This document shows, one piece after another, positions 33,069-45,660 of a stretch of DNA of 64,000 nt. The notes beneath the pieces were generated by a model. The model saw only the letters and a list, made by a program, of their open reading frames with translations, ran no database searches and had not been told where the DNA came from. Position numbers and translations under genes: made by a program. The first letter of the stretch is position 1, and the number at the start of each line of letters is the position of its first letter. Source of the DNA: Eutreptiella sp. 'Long Island Sound 2002' (lineage: Eukaryota > Protista > Euglenida); the NCBI GenBank assembly GCA_964036045.1, contig OZ038379.1, forward strand, positions 2,480,001 through 2,544,000. The letters run 5' to 3'.

Positions 33069-34297
33069 CCCTGTGTGCGCGCAATGGTGCATTCTTTCCA
33101 TAGTGCGCGCAAATTTTGAAAAATATGACCTTTGTAGCGCGCCTATTGCGCGCGCTCCACCGCGCTATATTGTCCTGTTTTTCAAAACCTGAAAATGTTT
33201 CAAAACCATGCTTTTTCCAGTGTCATGTGTTTCTCAAAAACCGCAGAAAATCCTGCGGCGTCTGGATGCACCCCGGATGGGAACCACACCACTGTCAATG
33301 GCACTCTGGAGAAAAGCAAGATTGTTAGCCCAGACCTCGGACAACACAGAGGTGGACTTCTCACCACAAAGGGCGACGTTAACAGTCCAGTGGTAGGACA
33401 ACGTCCTTGCCAAGTGACCATGGTTGGCAAAGGAAATGGACATTTGGCAACCACGATTCCCCCCCACAAGGCAACCCATCCCCCCTCACAATGATCCACA
33501 GCTCTCCTTGGCACTCCCTTGGGTATTGGAGATTAGAAACAATGGAATCAAAGGAAAATATATAGTCGAAAAAGTGCTGCAGGGGCCATTGCGAAAAGAC
33601 CGTGACGCCATGTGTGTGCACGTCAACCTCTAAATGCTGCCTACTTGCAAGCTGGTTCCATTCTGTGGCGAAACTAGCATAGGACGGTAGAGAAAAAAGG
33701 TGTGTGGGGACCTTACTTCGGGTCCAAGTAATCAAATCTTTGTACCTGAGGAAATAGCGCGCGCAACATGAGAACGTAGCGCGCACAGAAGTCAACGAAG
33801 CGCGTGCTAAGAGCGGAAGTGCGCGCAATGTCACATGCAAAGCGCGCGCAATAATACCTTCTTCTCGGAATCTTTAGGAGCAGGACCAAGTCTTCCACCG
33901 ACAGGGGTGTGACGGCGTTGGCAGCCTCGGTCCTGCGACGCTTCTTCTCTGCTTCAGACACGGGGACCCTTTTTTCCGACTTGGCCCACAAAGACCGTTG
34001 GACGGCAGACCCTGAGCAAAAAAACTCAACTAGGTCCGCCAAAAGGTCCTCGTTCTTCCACAAGGACCACCCATAGTGGGGGCCCAAAATGTTTGCAATC
34101 TTTCCTGACATTGACAACGTCACTTGCGGTGCCGGAAGCATCTGAAACTTTAGAGAAATAGGCGTTTTTGCCCTGCTCATTAGGACATGGGGTCACAAAC
34201 CCAAGACCCCGCGCCATAGCGCGCGATATGACCTGCAACGTCTTTGTAGTGCGCACTGAGCCATCGCGCGGCAATACCCTGTAGCGCGCACGCAGGG
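33069..34297 (-). mobile_element. Internally deleted CMC (CACTA/Mirage/Chapaev)-like DNA transposon, short copy
   Basis: TIRs CCCTGTGTGCGCGC / GCGCGCACGCAGGG (13/14) with 2-bp TSD TC. Removing it (and the 10-bp duplication) restores the PIF1 frame MSQEEFMSGCILAPRN. Superfamily assignment is inferred from termini, TSD and DDE motifs. Confidence 0.85.
33234..34141 (-). pseudogene. DDE transposase N-terminal/D1-D2 region (short copy), intron 33746-33857
   Basis: The spliced frame reads IPRR|RYKDLITW...LWIIVRGDGLPCGG (first catalytic D). After a frameshift it continues ...VALCGEKSTSVLSEVWANNL...RRIFCG and ends at the deletion breakpoint. Confidence 0.65.
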
Positions 34298-35016: not shown

Positions 35017-37883
35017 CTAAATGTTGCGTTGCTGCTCTGTCAAGGTTGGCGCACCATCCTCAACGACACGTCGCAAGTGTGCAACATCATACCCTTCATC
35101 CTGACCGTCAGGCTTATCGGACGTTGCACTGGGCACTGGAAACGGCATAGAAGGAAACGAGCGAAGAGAAAGTCCTTGCTTTTGCAGCATGCTCTCGACC
35201 CGCAATAGGGCTTCATTCACAATCTCGGCATGCGTTGGCTCGTTTTTTGCGCCAGGATGTGTACGTTGCCAATTCCAACGAATGTCGCTGATGAACTCTT
35301 CCTCGTACTTTAACCACAGCTTGTAGGGATCTTTTGGGGAGTTGTACTCCAAGATGGTGCAAAAAAGAAGTCGTTGTCGGCCGGGTTTGTAGTACATTTT
35401 TGCCTCGTTCAGACATTGTTCCCACTCGGTGTCATCTTCTAGAAGGCCGCAACGTACGCATGCTTCTTGAAAAGTGGCACATAGGTTGCTGTTAACGGTA
35501 CGCAAATCTTGGAAAGAGGTTGCACGAGCAACATGGTGTAACAATAGTCGGAGAAAGTATACTTCGCCCGCATTCGGGAGCACAAAGTACATGCGACCAC
35601 TTACTGTGTTCGATCCTTTCTTTCGAAATTTCCACTCTTTGGTCCTTGCATCATACGTGACCGCTCGGCATAGTCGGTGTAGAGCAAGTGCTTACCGAAA
35701 GCATGACCCGGCTTGGCGTTGGACTTCAACCAAGCGACCAGTGGTGTGTCAGGGGGTCCATCTCCAACGATGTCAGTAAGATGTTGTTGGTCCTTCCATC
35801 GAACGTGCTGCTGGTTTTCTAAGTGAACTGGTAGCCGCAATACCAAGGGAAATTGCTCATGTAGGTCAAATGCCAATAGTCTCCACACTCCTTCAGATGT
35901 GCAAATGTACCGGCCCTCCACGAACTCCACAACTTCGTTGACTTGATCGTCTCGTAGGCTGGCTTCGCCCCGGTCAAACCCCTTGTAAATGTACTCGTGC
36001 AAGTATTTGATAGCCGCAAGTGAGGCAGAGTACTCCACGTTGATGTGGCAAGCATATTTTCTGGCCAACGCACGCACATGTGGAACCACCCAACGATTAT
36101 CAAGTTCATGCCCCCTGCATGTTATAGTGCGGCCGTTGTTGCGACGGCAATAAAGAGGATATCCGTTCTCGCTGTTCGTGGTCACATCTTGGAATTCCCT
36201 CGGGTACCGATTTTTACAACGTCCATCCTTCATGCATGACCATTTCGGGTCGAGGGAACCGCATGGACCGTGCATGTAGCATTTTCCAATAATCTCGTAC
36301 AGCTCCGGGTCCTCATCCTTGTCTCGAATCTCAGCACAAATGACAGAATCATAATCCTCAGGTGTGAGCAATTTGTAGCCGGCGGCAAAGATAACCAAGA
36401 TATGTGCATGTGGTAGCCCACGTTTTTGAAATTCGATGACATACATGTGGCCGACTGTGCGACCAAGATAGCCATCATTCAGAAGGTCTTCTAACAAAGA
36501 CTGCAGCTTCAGCTTGAAAACGCGGGTAATCGAATCGGGATGATCATTTGGTTTTTGTCCTGGCAGTAGAGCGGCCTCCACCTCCAGCCAATTGGGATTG
36601 GCTGCCATGGTAATTAACAGGTCTGCCTTGCCCCGTTCGTTACAAATAGCAATCCCATCCTGAAAAGCGGCATGAAGAGCGCGCGGACTCCCGCCAAAGG
36701 AGCTGGGCAAAATTGACCGCTTTCCAACGGATGAAGCGTTGCGATCACCTTTTTTGGGTAGCACCGTCAACACCCGAATACAAATGTGTGCGCAATTTGG
36801 ACTGGTTCTGGGAGACATATTGCAAGCGTTGAGATTCCACCTTGCAATACTGGTCCACGATGTATTCCTCGTACAATTTTTGACATCGTTGCAAATAATT
36901 TCCAATGTACGATTCCGGACGCTGCATGAGGTAGAAGGTGGCAAAGTCTCGGGCTGTAACCGTCTGATGGCTTTTGGGCTTTGGGGCATTGCCTTGCTCT
37001 AGATTTTCGCATGCGCCGCGCTGACGCCGATAAGTGACATTCAGGGGAATGTCAATTGTCTAGCCTTGCTCACCGCGCGGAAAAAGGAGTACAAAGTGTA
37101 AAGGATCGTGGGCAGAGTTCAGGTCGGTGATACGTTTGACCCCACCCCCATGCATGCGGACCGCAATGCTACGAAGAGCGGCAACATGACTGCCATCCGG
37201 AATGAACGATGCAATGTCGCTGACACGGGGAACATTGTAGGTGCGTGGGTCAACGTTGGCATTGCACCGGAGCAAGATGGTCACATTGGGGACCTCAAGC
37301 TCAGCCGCGTGTTGAAAAAATTGTACATAGGCGTTGTGTGTGTTCAGCATAGCTCCCAGTTGGCGGAGTAGATCCTCTCTCAATTCCGATGACAGTGGAA
37401 GTCCCTAACATGCCTTCACTTGATCTTCGGTTTCCAAAATGTACACCTGTGCAAACCGTGGTGGTCGATTTTCTCTCGGCGTCAGGGGACCCATGCGGTG
37501 ATACACATTTCCAGACACCCGAAACTGGTGAGGGCCACCCGCCATTGGCCCTTTCTTGAACCGCATGTCGATATTTGCTTCAAGAGAGGCCATGGTGAAG
37601 GCTGAGTTGTACTTCCGAATGTTTTGCCGAAAATGGCGTCCCTGTCCAGTTTGCTCGGTCAATAGGGTTTTGAGCGGTTCCGGTGGATCAAGCAGAATGG
37701 GAAGTTTCACTTGTCCGCCACGGCAACAAATGGTAGGTGGCTCGGCACTCCAACGTAAAGTGTGACAATGTTCACACTCCACTTCCATGTTGTCAAGGAC
37801 GTGGCGCTTGATGTGGGTAATATCTTCATCGGCCTTTGATCTAAACAAGCATTCGTGGCGCAACCTTTGCATTTCCAATGCAT
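35017..37883 (-). pseudogene. Helitron RepHel: Rep/HUH endonuclease domain and linker
   Basis: CEHC..CCRGGQV, FRQNIRKYNSAF, RFAQVYI, DPLHFVLLFPRGEQG, LLITMAANPNW, EFQKRGLPHAHIL (HUH), HGPCG, YLHEYIYKG (motif 3), YFLRLLL. Stops at 37405, 37060 and 35017; frameshifts near 36770 and 35650. Confidence 0.95.
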
Positions 37884-38247
37884 CCCTGTGTGCGCGCAAT
37901 GGTGCATTCTTTCCATAGTGCGCGCAAATTTTGAAAAATATGACCTTTGTAGCGCGCCTATTGCGCGCGCTCCACCGCGCTATATTGTCCTGTTTTTCAA
38001 AACCTGAAAATGTTTCAAAACCATGCTTTTTCCAGTGTCATGTGTTTCTCAAAAACCCCTTGCTTTTCCAAAACATTACCTGTTGCTCACCCATCCCAAG
38101 ACACATGCAAAAACACTTTCTGCAAGGTCTGAGAAGTGTGCAACACTACAGGTCCTCATGGGCAACAACAGTGTAGCGCGCGCAAAATATTTACAGCGCG
38201 CGCTATGGATCTTACGGCGCGCGCTATATCAGGTATAGCGCGCACTA

Positions 38248-41053
38248 TCATCCAGTGGTCTCCTTAATGTTTGTGACCACCACTTCGGACTCCCACTGCT
38301 TCTCCCATGCTGCTCTTTGGTCTTCTGCCCCGGCTGCAGCTGGGGCTGTGTCCCCTTCTTCTTGTGCACTTGGGTCGCCTTCTGGGGTTGCTCCTTCTAG
38401 TGCCCCTTCTTCTTTCGGGGCTGCTCCTTCTCCTTCTGTTGTCTCTCCTTCTTGTGGCGCGGCCGCTGGTGCCTCTTCTTCTTGTGGTGGGGCTGGTGCG
38501 TCTTCTTCTTGTGCAGTTGCTGCTGGGGCTGGTGCCTCTTCTTCTTGTACAGCTGCAGCTGGTGCTTCTGCTTGTGCTGCAGCTTCGGCAGGTCCCTCTC
38601 CTTCTTGTGGGGAGGCTGGTGGCTGGGCTGGTGGGTCTCCTTGGGGCTGGTTCTTCTTTGGGGTTGGTGGCTTTGACGGGGACATCCTCATGGTCTTTGG
38701 GTCGGGGTTGAGGTCCACAATTTCATCGGGCTCGTACGTCTCCCACCACGACTGCCACTTGTCCAACTCCTCATACCTCCTCATACGCTTTTCTTTTGGC
38801 GGAGAACACCTGGCAGGTGGGCATGAACTCCGACCAGTCGTCCTCTTCCTCCTCCTCCTCCCCTTGTTTGCTCCCTTGTTGGCTGGGGCTCCACTGATAG
38901 TTGGGGATGATGACGGCCACGTGGTCCTGAGGGGCCCTCCTGGCCCCTGTTGGCTTGATTTCGGCTCTTTCCACAATCATCGGCGCGATCGCAGTGGTGC
39001 AGTAGATGATCCACCGAGGCTTGTAGCCGTCCTTGTAGGACCAATCTCGGCGCAGCATGAGCTCATCTCTTGCCAGCTTGTCCACGTCGGCTTTGCTCTG
39101 CTGCTTGGCCTTGGGAGCCGTACTGGGTGGGGTGGAACCGCACGGACCTCCTTGTTCTTGTGGCTGGTCTGGGACTGGGAGCGGCTGCTTCGGTGCTGGC
39201 TTTGATGCTAGCTGCGGCTGCGGTGCCTGCTTTGGTGCCTTCTTCACGTTGGGGCCAGTCTTGCTTGCCTGGAAAGAGAAGCGCAGAGGCATGGCACGCG
39301 TAGTACAGGGCATAGCACGCGCGGCGAAATGCATAGCACGAGCAATGACACCGATAGCGCGCGCTGCAGCATTACCTTTTCTGCTTTCTCCTCCTCTGCT
39401 TTCTTCCGTCTCTTCTCCTCCTCTTCCTTCTCCTTCTTCTTCCTCTTCTCTTCCTCTTCCTTCTCCTTCTTCTTCCTCTTTTCCTCCTCTTCCTTCTTCT
39501 TCTTCTTTTCGTCGTCCTCTTTCTTCTTGTTCTGTTCCGCTTGACGTTGGACTCTCTGTGGCGCTGCTGCCATCAGCTGCTGGTCGGCGGTCTTCTGGGC
39601 AAGGACCTTGCCAGGCGGGTGGGGGGGCTTAGCGGAGTGGGAGGCGGAGATGGCTGGTGGTAGGTGGCCGGTGGCTGGTGGCTCCTCGGTACGCTTCTTC
39701 TTCTGCCTTGGGGCTGTCACGGGTTCCATCTCCGGCATGGCAAAGGCGTCGGCCCAGTCCACCTCCAGCTCCTCCATCTGCCGCTTAGCCCGGGCCAGCA
39801 CCGGGGAGGGGCCTTGCTCCTTCCATCCGTCAAGCCAGTCGGCCGCATGCTTGGACTGCCCGGCAATGTCCGCGGGCACGCTGATCATCAACGGCCCTCT
39901 GCGGGATACCAGGCACAGGAGCTGCTCGAAGCTGCCCCCCTACGTGAAAACATGATAGACGGTGGGGCCGTAGCGCGCGCAAACGGTCAAATCGCGCGTG
40001 CTACGGCAAATGAAGCGCGCGCAACAATGTCGGCAGCGCGCGCAATGGCAAACATAGCGCGTACTTGTTGTTGTTGCTGTTGTGGTCTTCGCAGTTGCTG
40101 TTGGGCCATCTGCTGCGGCTGGGCCATCTGCTCCTGCTGCTGCTGCTGGAACAGTTGCAGTGTTGCCTGCTGGACTGCTGCCTGCTGTTGGAGCTGCTGC
40201 TGTTGCTGCACTTGCTGCTGCTGCGGCTGCTCCTTGTCCTTGACCGCCGTGGTTTTGACTTTGGCGCCGGTTGCAAGTGCCCTTGCTGCACTGGCTCCTT
40301 TCATGGCTGACCCCCGCAGCAAACTGGCCCCCGCACTTCTCACCGAGGGACACTCGTTCTTGAAGGCCATTGCCCCCGCGTCCGTCGCATTGATAAAGCT
40401 CGGTGGGTCCTTGTTGAAGTAGAAGTGGTGGACGGTCTTTGCGGTGGCACCCGGGAGGCGTGTGAGTCGGAACGTGACCCCACCCGTAACTTGCCCAGCA
40501 CGAAAACAACAGCTCGTACTCCTCCACGTTGCAGTGTCCACAGGCAGCTTGTCCTTCTTGGGTTGGCACGGAGGGATTCAACAGGTTCGCCAGACTGCAC
40601 CAGTTGCCAGTAGTGCTTTCGTCATGCCAGCAGGGTTTCAGAGCTCTGTCGGGGATCCTTGCAAGCGCCGTAGCTCTTGGGCGCCAGAACTTGCTGCGTT
40701 GGGGAGAACTGGGTCAGCTGCTAGGACAGTGTCTGCGGAAAACAAGACAAACGGCGTTAACAAGGACGCGCAACGAGGACTTGCGTAGTGCGCACAACGA
40801 GACGGGTAGCACGCACAAGAAGAGCGTAGCACGCGCAACGGAAACAGTAGTGCGCACGGCAAGAAACCTGTGGCTGCATGCTCCACGGCGTCGTCGACGG
40901 CTGCTGCAGTCCCGGTTGTACAGCTGCATGTGGCAGTGGTGGCGGCGCCGCAGCAGCTGGTGTTGCCGCTGCAGCAGTTGTTGGCGGTGCTGCAGGAGGC
41001 GGATACCCCCAGCCCACGGGTTGTATGGGCAAGAGGGTTACATTAAAGTACCC
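38248..41053 (-). pseudogene. Second, spliced gene of the CMC-like element (Q/P/E/K low-complexity protein; TnpA-like position)
   Basis: GT-AG introns 40733-40867, 39940-40064 and 39269-39375. The last two join adjacent ORFs in phase 0 (QQQ|GGSFEQLL; AEK|ASKTGP). Two stops and a frameshift in one exon; 10-bp duplication at 38767-38786. Confidence 0.6.
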
Positions 41054-41322
41054 CTGTTCCAGCAGTAATACAAAAAGGAAAACGCAGCAACAAAAAAATA
41101 GAAAACGACAAAAAGAACGGACAGAAAAGCAACAAATCTCTGTGTCTGTCAATGCATTCGCAATTGGCGCCAAATCTGAAGTGCGTAGTCATAGCACGCT
41201 ACTTCTGATTGTATATCGCGATTTCAAGGGTTCCGGCGCTTGAAAACAGCATACGCGCGCGATAGTGGTCATTGCGCGCACTAGATTCTATTTAGCACGC
41301 GCTATAAAACAAATGGCGCGCG

Positions 41323-42459
41323 CTACCACGGTTCCTCATCCGCAAAATATGCCCTAGCGTCGTCGGCCAATTTTTGTGCATTGTACAAGTTGCTTCTGGA
41401 GGTCCCGTTCCACCTTGGTACTTCAAAGTACAGGAATAGACGCTCATTAACCTGCCTCAGCATCTTAATGCGGCGCGACACTAGGCTTCCTGCCCCCCCA
41501 ACTCTATCACAAATAGAGGACCAAATGTCCTTCAGCACCCCGTTGCTCCCTTCCAAAAGATCCCCCGAAAACATTCCTAGGCCATAGGACCGTATGGCCT
41601 GAATAGTGACTGTAGCATCGTGCAACAGCCAGTTAATATAAGGTGATCTTTTTTCGGCGCAAACCCACCTCTGGAAAGCCTGGGCAACCTCTGGAGCCTG
41701 CAATGCTCCCTCTTCAAACATTGTGCCATACATGTCCCCCAGTAGTATGTACATGGCAACCACTGATGTGTGCATCCTCATGTCACCCCCACCCATCCCC
41801 CCTCACAATGATCCACAGCTCTCCTTGGCACCCCCTGGGGTATTGGAGGTTAGAAACAATGGAATCAAAGGAAAATATATAGTCGAAAAAGTGCTGCAGG
41901 GGCCACTGCGAAAAGACCGTGACGCCATCTGTGTGCACGTCAACCTCTAAATGCTGCCTACTTGCAAGCTGGTTCCATTCTGTGGCGAAACTAGCATAGG
42001 ACGGTAGAGAAAAAAGGTTTGTGGTGACCTTACTTCGGGTCCAAGTAATCAAATCTTTGTACCTGAGGAAAATAGCGCGCGCAACATGAGAACGTAGCGC
42101 GCGCAGAAGTCAACGAAGCGCGTGCTATGAGCGGAAGTGCGCGCAATGTCACATGCAAAGCGCGCGCAATAATACCTTCTTCTCGGAATCTTCAGGAGCA
42201 GGACCAAGTCCACCACCGACAGGGGTGTGACGGCGTTGGCAGCCTCGGTCCTGCGACGCTTCTTCTCTGCTTCAGACACGGGAACCCTTTTTTTCAACTT
42301 GGCCCACAAAGACCGTTGGACGGCAGACCCTGAGCAAAAAAACTCAACTAGGTCCGCCAAAAGGTCCTCGTTCTTCCACAAGGACCACCCATGGTGGGGG
42401 CCCAAAATGTTTGCAATCTTTCCTAACATTGACAACGTCACTTGCGGTGCCGGAAGCAT
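41323..42459 (-). pseudogene. DDE transposase (long copy) with D1-to-pre-E deletion, intron 42063-42175
   Basis: IIVRGDG is fused to GGDMRMHT. SPYINWLLHDAT...YGLGMFSGDLLEGSNGVLK resembles the catalytic-E helix of Transib/RAG1/Chapaev-type transposases. Confidence 0.7.
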
Positions 42460-42615
42460 CTGAAACTTTAGAGAAATAGGCGTTTTTGCCCTGCTTATTA
42501 GGACATGGGGTTACAAACCCAAGACCCCGAGCCATAGCGCGCGCTATGACGCGCGATGTCTTTGTAGTGCGCACTCAGCCATCGCGCGGCAATACCCTCA
42601 AGCACGCACGCAAGG

Positions 42616-44052
42616 ATGGGCCCTCCGCACTCGCCTTTGCTCATTAATGTTGTCTTTGGCCTCTGGATATCGCTCCCGTCTTTGCTCATTGATGTTGTCC
42701 TAGTTCTGCGTGTACGCCTCTGGATATCGCTCCCGTCTTTGCTCATTGATGTTGTCCTTCGCCTCTGGATATCGCTCCCGTCTTTGCTCATTGATGTTGT
42801 CCTTGTCCGCCTCTTGCTATCGCTGCCGTCTTTGCTCATTGATGTTGTCCTTGTTTGCCTCTTGATATCCCTCCCGTTTTTGCGCATTGATGTTGTCCTT
42901 CTTTTGCGCGTACACTTGTTTATATCGTTCTCGTCTTTGCTCATTGATGTTGTCCTTGTTCTGCGCGTACGCCTCTGGATATCGCTCCCGTCTTTGCTCA
43001 TTGATTTTTTCCTTCGCCTCTTGATATTGCTCCCGTCTTTGCTCATTGATGTTGTCCTTGTCCGCCTCTTGATATCGCTGCCGTCTTTGCTCATTGATGT
43101 TGTCCTTGTTTGCCTCTTGATATCGCTCCCGTCTTCGCGCATTGATGCTGTCCTTCTTTTGCGCGTACACTTGTTTATATCGTTCTCGTCTTTGTTTATT
43201 GACTTCGTCCATGACCTCTTGAGATCGTTCGCGTCTTTGCTTATTGATTTCTTCCTTGCTTTGCGTGCATTGTGCTCGTTTTTCGGCGTGTCCATCATCG
43301 CTTCCCCCTGCATTTAGGTCCAAATGTGGTTCTCGTTGTCGCTTTTTTCGTGCTTGTACGCCATGCGTGTCCGCAGGAATGGGTTGTGCGATCACATTTG
43401 GAGATCCGAGTGCACGTGATGCACTGCTAGCCGGCTGGCCAAAGGTGGGGTTCATATGTGGGTTCAACCCTAATTGGCCTGAGCCAGGCGGCGGAGTGCT
43501 TGCAAAGCTTTGGTGGGAAGATGGATCAAACCAAGGCTGGTTGGGAACGTTTTGTGGGGGCATTGGCAGATATGGAGGGAAGTATGGCTGAGCTTGGGGT
43601 AGTAAAGCTGTTGGTGTGTAATTGACCGCCATGCGATGGACACCCGGAGACGCAACGGCACTGGAACTTAGAGGAATGGTGAAGGACAATGACCCGGGCG
43701 TTGGGATTGGCCCCTCAAATTGTACATTCGGAGTGGATGGGGTACAGCTTGTTGCCACAAGCGGTGACGGCAATGGGCCAGGTTGAACGTTTGAAGCTTG
43801 TACAGGTGGAGGATTGGATGATATTGACGGCGAGGAAGCTTCATGCACGGCCGTAACTATCCCCGATTGCATCATTGCTGACATAAGATCCCTCCAAGCA
43901 TAGTGGTCTTCTGCTTGCCAAAAGAAAAGACGACCCGTAATCCGCTTTTGAGTTGCATCCATCCAACGGTTGAAAATAGGATAATAGTGCATATTCTGTT
44001 GCACGAAAGCATGCACTCTTTCCGCGTCATCGTTGCATAATGTGGGCAACAT
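42616..44052 (-). pseudogene. Helitron RepHel N-terminal extension: ~65-aa globular domain, Pro/Ser linker, KDNINEQRRERYQEA-type repeats
   Basis: ATG at 44052 (MLPTLCNDDAERVH) preceded by a pyrimidine-rich AG acceptor. The repeats at 42630-43260 contain two point stops. The segment joins the Rep domain in frame once the insertion is removed. Confidence 0.8.
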
Positions 44053-45660
44053 GGCGCAACAAATCAACCTTGACAAAGAAGAAATGGAAACAATAATGGC
44101 AAGAACCAGACTGTTGGGCGTGGCCTTGTATGCATAGCACATTGGATGTGCACTGTGGTTTTCTTTCTTGGAATGGTGTTTAGTGATTGGTTGTATTTTG
44201 GGCGTACGTAGCCTTGTATGCATAGCACATTGGAATGATGTCCAGTGATTGGGTATACATACGGCAAACCTCGGAATGCTATAATGGCATCCCCCCCTTA
44301 CCACTTCATCCTTTACACCTAGTCGCTCTGCCTTCTTAATAGTCATTCGCCAAGTGAGCCTCCACTAAAAGGCACATTGGAATGTGCCACGGCCACAACT
44401 ACACATTGAATTGTACATCGCGACCAGGCATTCGTTGGATGTTGTAGTTGTGATCAACTGTCCAGATCCCATTTGACGTTTCCGTTTATGTTTGTCATTT
44501 GCGGTGGAAATACTTTCTTCGAATTTTTTGAACGGTTGTAACAGACAGGCAGCTTGATGCTGTAGTTGTGATCAACCGTCCAAGGTCCAATTGACCTGTC
44601 TATTTCTTCTTCTTATTTGCGGTGAAAATAGTCTATACAAATTTTTTGAACGGTTGTAACCACTCAGGCGAATCATGTACAGCCTACAGATTGGCCCGTT
44701 GCGAAAAAGCACAAATTGAGGCAGCACACCTAGAAACGATTGTTCAGGGCCGCCTTTTCAACACGCCGTGGAGGTGTAAACCAAATGCTTCAAATCACCG
44801 TTGTGTGCCGATAATGCAATAACAATTGCTAGGTATGAAATCGGTCAAAACCAATCGAGATTGCATTGGTTGTTCATTACAATAACACACTTTCCGGGTT
44901 GATTTAGCCCATATTGCAGGCAACGGGTAGCACAAGGAGTGTGGGACACAAGGCATCACAAAATCGGTATTTTCACAACAATCAAACGTTACCAATTTCC
45001 GGGCTGGGCGCCCATTGGTACGAAATTTGGAGCGTCTTTGTTTTTTATAGGCACGTGAACAACGAGTTTGGGAATGTTCATTCTCCTTGAAAACATGATC
45101 TTTTACTTGACGATGGCTCTTTTGTCGGACACCCAAAAGATAATGCAACTACCCACTTGGGCCCCTCTTGGCTGTTTCCTTGTTCTTACTGAGGTTTGTG
45201 TGCCATTGATGTAGTACCCATGGGATGGGACATCTAACAATGGGACAGATTACAAACTATGAATTGGGGTGGACCAGCAATATTTCATGTCACCAACACA
45301 ATTGCTTCTCACCCCATGCATTCAAACGCAAACATCCAATAGTGAGCATTGTGAATGGTCCCACACAAAGGGTGCTTACAGCATGTAGATTCGCCAATTG
45401 TTGCTATAATACATGTTGTAAATACATAGCAATTGAAGACAGGTGTTCCTTAGAGAACACTGCGCGGAATCAAGCACTAAGCAACAGATCATCATTGTAG
45501 GCACGGATATCGTTAATTTGCAATATATACACAAAACGCCCATGGTGTGTTGTGGCTTGCGACAGAAACAGTATTACATAAAGACGACGGGCGAGTTTTC
45601 CCTAAAAAATCAGTACGTGATGATGTTGCGTAAAGCAACCAATCATTGCAAAACCAAACT

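Follow-up and report, generated by a model that had tools for sequence, protein, structure and literature searches.

Phased arrays of the terminal motif fill the putative introns of a euglenid transposon with a predicted RAG1-like transposase and are probably protein-docking sites

The window analyzed here comprises 64,000 nucleotides of a Euglena-type alga (Eutreptiella sp. 'Long Island Sound 2002'; assembly GCA_964036045.1, contig OZ038379.1, positions 2,480,001 to 2,544,000), and all positions given below refer to it. Window positions 37884–42615 represent one copy of a high-copy transposon with terminal inverted repeats (TIRs), a 2-bp target site duplication (TSD) and two genes on the minus strand. 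Its features are as follows.

37884–37990: left terminus (3' end relative to the genes); the TIR starts CCCTGTG and then runs into the first motif copy; four motif copies with centres near 37894, 37922, 37954 and 37966 are not 21-bp phased; the TSD AT lies at 37882–37883.
38170–38250: array A, four motif units 20–21 bp apart, starting directly after the stop codon of gene 2 (38248–38250); its length is constant at 91 nt in 14 of 16 copies.
38248–39268, minus strand: gene 2, exon 4 including the stop codon, frameshifted in this copy.
39269–39375, minus strand: intron B, 107 nt (in 14 of 16 copies), GT..AG, four motif units of the variant form TAGCACGCGC.
39376–39939, minus strand: gene 2, exon 3, with a K/E-rich stretch.
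39940–40064, minus strand: intron C, 125 nt, GT..AG, five units; the GT of the donor site lies inside a unit.
40065–40732, minus strand: gene 2, exon 2; this copy lacks about 450 bp at 40693 that other copies have.
40733–40867, minus strand: intron D, 135 nt, GT..AG, five units of decayed or variant forms; it could instead be the outron of a trans-spliced gene 2.
40868–41027, minus strand: gene 2, exon 1; the start codon is ATG in the consensus and ATA in this copy.
41250–41330: array E, four units exactly 21 bp apart; the transposase stop codon TAG (41323–41325) is the first three bases of a unit.
41323–42062, minus strand: gene 1 (transposase), exon 2; this copy lacks about 700 bp at 41791, including the second catalytic Asp region; an intact 527-aa version is present in another sequence (L024:6340–7923).
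42063–42175, minus strand: intron F, 113 nt, GT..AG, phase 2, five units; the junction reads ..KIPRR|R|YKDLITW...
42176–42459, minus strand: gene 1, exon 1 (94 aa), the basic and predicted helical N-terminal part.
42460–42615: right terminus (5' end relative to the genes) with motif copies and the right TIR, which is mutated in this copy; the TSD AT lies at 42616–42617.
33069–34297: a 1.23-kb internal-deletion derivative of the same family, which keeps both termini and array F and has the TSD TC.

The first-pass annotation had described arrays of GCGCGC-like motifs, phased at about 21 bp, in four GT-AG introns, at two further sites and in the TIRs but not in the exons, and this observation is confirmed. 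The motif is a 13-bp sequence, RTAGCGCGCGC[A/T]A, present in 4–5 copies in each of the four introns and directly after both stop codons. The same motif forms the inner part of the TIR, which begins CCCTGTG followed by TGCGCGCAATGG. Within positions 37883–42620, 20 of 35 distances between neighbouring cores are 19–23 bp and 11 are exactly 21 bp, whereas random placement would give about one by our estimate. Outside the two family copies, none of the 84 cores in the window forms an array. In the consensus of 16 copies the spacings are 20, 21 and 21 bp in array A, 21, 21 and 21 bp in array B, 21, 21, 21 and 20 bp in array C, 23, 20, 21 and 21 bp in array D, and 21, 21 and 21 bp in array E. The third unit of array B is degenerate and was placed by hand 21 bp after the second; the core detector itself gives 21 and 42 bp. 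For array F, measured in the window copy only, they are 22, 21, 19 and 23 bp. The motif logo shows 13 informative positions, and the spacers are near 0 bits.

Eleven copies share the left end exactly, beginning CCCTGTGTGCG, while their flanks differ. All four introns have a pyrimidine tract before the AG, and their lengths are nearly invariant among copies. The reading frame changes across three of them, and the fourth carries an in-frame stop in the consensus. Splicing is inferred from sequence alone. Every protein found in databases for this family is a prokaryote-style, unspliced ORF call, one of which (P0174) reads straight through intron F, and in a search for transcript evidence the Logan contig L057 had no nucleotide match to the element.

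Several lines of evidence indicate that the arrays are constrained. Among 13 independent copies, divergence from the consensus is 6.8% at motif positions and 6.3–7.0% in exons, as compared with 10.4% in spacers and 9.9% in intron flanks, although the copies share ancestry and the contrast between motif and spacer is thus not a clean statistical test. CpG sites diverge by 7.6% inside arrays and by 12.1% in other noncoding DNA. CpG decay as the source of the variant units was rejected because CpG sites are not hypermutable in these copies and the variant units are already present in the family consensus. The exons hold one core where a first-order Markov simulation expects 6.4 ± 2.5 (6 of 300 simulations at or below one), while the noncoding parts hold 35 against 14 expected. 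Whether the phased motif is a generic feature of host introns had been named beforehand as a possible refutation. Host myosin introns are GT-AG and 75–140 nt long, and no such arrays were found in about 115 kb of myosin loci. Moreover, all 100 listed genome-wide hits of the phased pattern, which are a sample only, have spacers of arrays A, C or F of this family.

Distant relatives from other assemblies, whose transposases are 27–42% identical, place arrays of their own, different motifs in their introns and after their stop codons. The relative L056:8525–13282, with a transposase 30–33% identical to that of our family, is the one complete element among them, 4.76 kb long, and the inner part of its 42-nt TIR is a TTCGAAC-type motif. 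Arrays of that motif lie in both subterminal regions, in a 118-nt GT-AG intron inside the transposase gene, after the transposase stop codon, and in a 163-nt GT-AG intron of its gene 2. In L056, however, the exons are not depleted of the TTCGAA core (five cores against about one expected by our estimate). A second relative, L055, has two array-filled introns and a 5' array with a TTTGAACG motif, a third, L050, has GTAGAACG arrays before the main transposase exon and starting at its stop codon, and a fourth, L053, has a 19-bp tandem array after its stop codon. The transposase introns of L054/L056 and L055 interrupt a stretch that is continuous in our open reading frame, so those array segments must be removed to keep the conserved protein. 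The relative in L031 is truncated by a satellite and too decayed to judge. A total of 366 relatives was found.

The transposase model (AF2; pLDDT 82, pTM 0.82) matches the RAG1 core fold. Its 49 best PDB matches are RAG1, RAG1L and HzTransib, with E values down to 3e-11 (Foldseek probability 1.0, TM about 0.5 over about 500 columns). At the sequence level, the exons were searched separately. A profile search of PDB sequences gave RAG1L at E 0.04, a single-sequence search (phmmer) of the same set found nothing, Pfam scans of all element ORFs and of 24 relatives found nothing useful, and the intact 527-aa exon and 23 relatives had no Pfam hit (E up to 10 in the former search). Sequence motifs line up with the catalytic regions: GDG, GGDSPW, and LLEGSN against SEGNEAGNK of RAG1L. 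The second protein is unclassified and shows no sign of being RAG2-like. A word-based protein search with the gene-2 domain found only copies of the same family, BLASTP between gene 2 and the second gene of L056 is only suggestive (E 0.04), and structure prediction of the gene-2 domain gave no usable model (pLDDT 34) on which a ParB-like or other fold could be judged. Look-ups in a protein atlas gave only low-recognition leads, PIF1 for a piece of the transposase and CxC clusters for gene 2, which were not used.

The element differs from Transib and RAG-like (ProtoRAG) transposons in its TSD, which is 2 bp rather than 5 bp. Of four insertions examined, AT, TC and GT are perfect duplications and a fourth pair is TA/CA, and a 5-bp duplication is excluded for a nested copy (on C19) whose target sequence is known. 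The end CCCTGTG shares six of seven bases with the heptamer-type end CACTGTG but lacks the CAC. If the ends are recognized through the terminal heptamer plus a separate inner motif, the logic would be that of heptamer plus nonamer. In our element, however, the inner motif is repeated many times, also inside introns and after stop codons, which we could not find described for Transib or RAG-like elements.

The interpretation offered in the first-pass annotation, namely same-face arrays of protein-binding sites hidden from translation as introns, by analogy with CACTA elements, or alternatively RNA folding of each intron, is supported in part. Arrays of putative binding sites are the best explanation: arrays built from the TIR motif, confined to noncoding segments, constrained in the motif but not in the spacers, and repeated with different motifs in diverged relatives are what arrays of binding sites for an element-encoded protein should look like. 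The analogy with CACTA (En/Spm) subterminal repeats bound by TnpA holds as a description of how the element might work, since both have many copies of a short motif related to the ends and two genes. The element is not a member of this group, though, because its TIR begins CCCTG rather than CACTA (or CACTG), its TSD is 2 bp rather than 3 bp, no CACTA-type transposase domain (Pfam Transposase_21/24) was found, and the predicted fold is RAG1-like. Furthermore, CACTA repeats are known only from the subterminal regions. Strict 21-bp, same-face phasing is not supported as a general rule, as relatives use a 19-bp period or irregular spacing of 8–26 bp, and it holds for this family only.

Taken together, we interpret the stretch as one slightly defective copy of a cut-and-paste transposon of roughly 5.8 kb, whose 13-bp, largely palindromic motif may be the docking site of an element-encoded DNA-binding module. 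The most likely candidate is the N-terminal part of the transposase, by analogy with the nonamer-binding domain of RAG1; the gene-2 protein is the other candidate. We propose, with moderate confidence, that the arrays kept in every internal noncoding segment work at the DNA level as loading pads, which would concentrate the protein on its own element and help to bring the two ends together. They would also leave any internal-deletion derivative with binding arrays next to its ends. In this view, placement in introns and UTRs lets the arrays coexist with long open reading frames. Our data show the arrays and their phasing, the identity of the motif with the TIR, the restriction to noncoding DNA, the constraint on motif but not on spacers, the recurrence of the layout with other motifs in relatives, and the RAG1-like fold of the transposase model, whereas protein binding, the identity of the binding protein, the effect on transposition and the splicing of the introns are inferred. 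Extra transposase-binding sites away from the cleavage sites help to assemble the synaptic complex in other systems, such as the internal activating sequence of phage Mu and the subterminal repeats of the hAT element Hermes bound by an octamer. Those sites, however, are single internal regions or subterminal only, and not phased arrays placed in every intron and UTR.

Transposons carry repeated binding sites near their ends, but a layout in which every intron and UTR of the element's own genes is a phased array of the end motif does not seem to have been described; we found no paper on it in a limited literature search. If the arrays are working sites, they show a new way in which a mobile element reconciles dense cis-acting DNA with long coding regions, and they provide a concrete case in which intron content, and perhaps intron origin, is dictated by DNA-level function. 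The transposase adds a deep-branching protist relative with a 2-bp TSD to the RAG1/Transib fold, which is useful for the history of the V(D)J recombinase, and because many copies keep open reading frames the element is amenable to experiment. It is tempting to speculate, although this remains tentative, that a widespread, unnamed clade of RAG1-fold transposons in protists uses arrays of its own end-recognition palindrome as DNA-level assembly hubs and creates or colonises spliceosomal introns to house them. If so, the need for transposase-binding DNA drives intron birth inside the transposon's own genes, with the motif co-evolving with the ends in each lineage.

An alternative that we consider unlikely, yet the strongest of those remaining, is that the arrays are historical by-products without present function. 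The introns would then have arisen when pieces of the element's own motif-rich terminal DNA, or small derivatives of it, landed in the genes and survived only because they could be spliced, in the manner of introners, or the arrays grew by slippage in existing noncoding DNA. Indeed, intron positions differ between lineages, which fits an origin by insertion of array DNA at least as well as selection for arrays: our family has an intron between the N-terminal part and the core, while L054/L056 and L055 have one between the first and second catalytic Asp regions. In addition, the family does insert into itself, as shown by the nested copy on C19, and the first three units of array B share extra flanking bases, as local duplication would give. 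On the other hand, the intron borders carry neither a TIR (CCCTG..CAGGG) nor a 2-bp TSD, spacers carry no information while motif and 21-bp register are kept, motif positions are conserved like exons, arrays also sit outside introns and start exactly at the stop codons, and the same layout recurs in at least four diverged lineages, each with its own motif. Introners and transposon-derived introns likewise consist of transposon material and differ in position between related genes (PMC9860276, PMC12130899), but introners are mobile units with TIRs and TSDs that create introns in host genes, whereas the introns described here lie within the transposon's own genes and were absent from the host genes sampled.

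It is improbable that the arrays act at the RNA level by folding each intron and bringing the splice sites together, or by regulating splicing, in the spirit of structure-dependent euglenid introns. The units can pair, and in intron F the first and last units form a stem that encloses most of the intron; moreover, the host is a euglenid, where structured nonconventional introns are common (PMC11170887). However, fold z-scores of the four introns against dinucleotide shuffles are weak (–0.18, –2.28, –1.67 and –1.90), and the strongest fold (z –5.3) belongs to array A, which is not an intron. All four introns have the GT-AG borders and pyrimidine tract of the conventional type, unlike euglenid nonconventional introns with non-GT/AG borders and base pairing between the intron ends (PMC11170887). 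Each unit is a palindrome by itself and equals the TIR motif, which is what a dimeric DNA-binding protein needs and an RNA stem does not, and the same arrays lie after stop codons and at the ends.

Least likely of all, the array segments might be gaps between separate short ORFs or decayed coding sequence, a view for which it can be said that intron D is a multiple of 3, is read through in one copy (L019) and could be an outron, and that P0174 reads through intron F, but against which long open frames on both sides switch frame exactly at GT..AG pairs, conserved in 14–16 copies, many copies keep a 493-aa open transposase exon, and in relatives protein homology resumes in frame after array-filled GT-AG segments.

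The arrays lie inside one repeat unit of 4,732 bp (window positions 37884-42615), and comparison with four 20-kb stretches and eleven 5.5-kb stretches of the same genome showed that homology starts and stops at exactly these points. Eleven copies begin with the same CCCTGTGTGCGCGCAATGG while their flanks differ, and the other end is its inverted complement. Four insertions with both ends visible have 2-bp duplications, of which AT, TC and GT are perfect and one pair is TA/CA. A 5-bp duplication is excluded for a copy nested in another copy because its target sequence is known. The family is very abundant: a DNA search gave 1,285 candidate places and a protein search 8,519 candidates, many copies keep an open 493-aa transposase exon, and copies are 88-96% identical. 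A full-length copy (C19) is about 5.8 kb. By contrast, the copy studied here is defective as it lacks about 450 bp at 40693 and about 700 bp at 41791 relative to most copies, has ATA as the gene-2 start codon where the consensus has ATG, and carries a frameshift in the last exon.

Both predicted genes of the element are located on the minus strand and are organized as follows.

42459-42176, minus strand: gene 1 (transposase), exon 1
42175-42063, minus strand: gene 1, intron F
42062-41323, minus strand: gene 1, exon 2
near 41027, minus strand: start of gene 2
40867-40733, minus strand: gene 2, intron D
40064-39940, minus strand: gene 2, intron C
39375-39269, minus strand: gene 2, intron B
38250-38248, minus strand: stop codon of gene 2

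All four inferred introns are of the GT..AG type with a pyrimidine tract in front of the AG. In the consensus of 16 copies the open frame moves to another frame across C, B and F, whereas D carries an in-frame stop. The splice-site dinucleotides and the intron lengths are kept in nearly all copies (107 nt in 14 of 16 for B and 125 nt in 12 of 16 for C). No transcript evidence was found, the proteins held in the databases for this family being unspliced ORF calls, and intron D could be an outron because the host trans-splices. At the position of intron D two copies of the family (L014 and L017) carry a foreign insertion rich in TTCG(T/C)ACGAA-type palindromes, which is probably another transposon family of the same genome that also uses repeated palindromes.

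The first-pass annotation had described GCGCGC-type motifs phased about every 21 bp in the four introns, and this observation is confirmed by our analysis. With a core defined as GCGCGC allowing one transition, 20 of 35 neighbour distances in the element are 19-23 bp and 11 are exactly 21. By contrast, the rest of the window, apart from the second family copy, has 84 cores and no array. In the family consensus almost every step is exactly 21. Alignment of 26 units yielded a 13-bp motif, RTAGCGCGCGC[A/T]A, while the remaining 8 positions carry about 0-0.25 bits. The core is palindromic, and 9 of the 26 units are full palindromes. The arrays fill the four introns but leave the last 10-35 nt before the AG free, and they also begin exactly at the two stop codons. 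The TAG that ends the transposase gene (41323-41325) is itself the first three bases of a unit, and the gene-2 TGA (38248-38250) is followed at once by TAGTGCGCGCTA. The two subterminal regions hold the motif too, but at irregular spacing (28, 33, 12 at one end and 11, 19, 36 at the other). Exons hold 1 core against 6.4 +/- 2.5 expected.

A generic feature of host introns had been named beforehand as an outcome that would speak against the element-specific reading, and no such feature was found in the sample examined. About 115 kb of myosin loci contain no array, and the introns read there are GT-AG, 75-140 nt long, and without a GCGCGC motif. Likewise, a published survey of Euglena gracilis introns describes GT-AG introns with a GTGTG donor consensus and C-rich tracts and mentions no such arrays (PMC11170887). 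Each of the 100 listed genome-wide hits to three phased AGCGCGC copies carries the spacers of arrays of this family, namely those of introns C or F or of array A, which follows the gene-2 stop codon. At the host myosin loci (L032-L034) several myosin genes are uninterrupted over more than 1,200 codons while others have many short introns, and intron density is very uneven among paralogues in this genome. The 24-nt E. gracilis spliced-leader sequence, searched with up to one mismatch allowed, occurs 5,458 times dispersed over the chromosomes (all 100 listed hits are exact) against 0 for the control, from which the host is inferred to be a Euglena. The count also hints at massive dispersal of SL-RNA genes or retroposed trans-spliced cDNAs.

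Among 13 independent copies, divergence from the consensus is 6.8% at motif positions, 10.4% in spacers, 9.9% in intron flanks and 6.3-7.0% in exons. CpG sites diverge by 7.6% inside arrays and by 12.1% in other noncoding DNA. Because the copies share ancestry these values are suggestive rather than a formal test, yet they fit selection on the motif and its register during the diversification of the family. CpG sites are not hypermutable overall, and the variant units of the arrays in introns B and D are already present in the consensus. They are therefore not decay of this copy.

A full scan of 1.8 billion representative proteins found 366 relatives of the transposase, none with a Pfam family, and the DNA of five of them was read. 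The first, L056:8525-13282 from another eukaryote assembly, has a transposase 30-33% identical to ours and is a complete 4.76-kb element. Its 42-nt TIRs have a TTCGAAC-type motif as their inner part, and arrays of that motif lie in both subterminal regions, in a 118-nt GT-AG intron inside the transposase, right after the transposase stop, and in a 163-nt GT-AG intron of its second gene. The relative on L055 has a 185-nt intron at the same transposase site and a 288-nt intron further on, both of which carry TTTGAACG arrays, and there is a 5' array as well. The relative on L050 (42% identity) has GTAGAACG arrays in front of the main transposase exon which end in a pyrimidine tract and an AG at the position of our intron F. 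More arrays extend from its stop codon onward, this TAG being followed at once by TAGAACG. The relative on L053 has a 19-bp tandem array after its stop codon. The fifth relative, in another eukaryote assembly (L031), is too decayed to judge, and it is abutted and truncated by a 209-bp G+C-rich satellite (47 copies; L031:28-9936). Telomere-like CCCTAA repeats (2-3 units) lie inside or at the edge of two relatives (L050:1745-1765 and L055:50-70), and in L050 they sit between the array after the transposase stop and the start of the next gene.

The transposase introns of L054/L056 and L055 interrupt a stretch that is continuous in our reading frame, and homology resumes after them. Those array segments must therefore be removed from the mRNA. 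It also follows that intron positions differ between lineages while the content, the element's own motif, stays the same. Two elements of one foreign assembly use different motifs, and thus the motif follows the element and not the host. Since spacing in relatives is either a 19-bp period or irregular, the 21-bp register is a trait of this family only.

The element is not a CACTA transposon, the group to which the first-pass annotation had likened it. Pfam searches, with exons searched separately, found nothing. A profile of 24 relatives hit amphioxus RAG1L among PDB sequences at E 0.04, with the alignment running through the region of the catalytic Glu. An AlphaFold model built with that alignment has pLDDT 82 and pTM 0.82, and its 49 best PDB matches are RAG1, RAG1L and HzTransib (E down to 3e-11, TM about 0.5 over about 500 columns). 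The next match is the P-element transposase at E 5e-4. The 2-bp TSD, the CCCTG end and the unrelated second gene set the element apart from Transib and the RAG-like elements. Gene 2, estimated at about 970 aa, has P/A-, Q- and K/E-rich stretches and one globular Cys/His-containing domain, but no classification of its product was obtained.

The interpretation offered in the first-pass annotation, that the element spreads same-face protein-binding arrays through its body and hides them as introns, is supported in part. Taking these data together, we propose that the motif is the inner recognition site of the ends, bound by an element protein, and that the internal arrays are extra loading sites. 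In this view they would concentrate that protein on the element, help to pair ends that lie 5-6 kb apart, and leave deletion derivatives with arrays beside their ends. A 1.23-kb internal-deletion derivative of the same family in the window (33069-34297) keeps both termini and the array of intron F. This mechanism, including binding by an element protein, is inferred, whereas the identity of the motif with the TIR, the palindromic units, the constraint pattern and the repeated layout in relatives are the facts on which it rests. The architecture is real and unusual and belongs to an unnamed clade of transposons with a predicted RAG1 fold, and it is worth experimental follow-up. Among the alternatives, it is possible, though rather unlikely, that the arrays are relics of intron birth from the element's own terminal DNA, and this view and ours can both be partly true. 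A role of the motifs in RNA folding is less likely still, because the fold z-scores of the introns are only -0.2 to -2.3 and the arrays also occur where no intron is. A wrong gene model appears very improbable.

Both the copy studied here and the 1.23-kb derivative, whose TSD is TC and which lies 3.6 kb from the full copy, are inserted into a Helitron RepHel gene on the minus strand (35601-37899 and 42623-44346, with Helitron_like_N at 35601-36989). The upstream part of this interrupted gene contains 45/255-bp tandem repeats at 42611-43258 that encode a repeated ..NINEQRRERY.. peptide.
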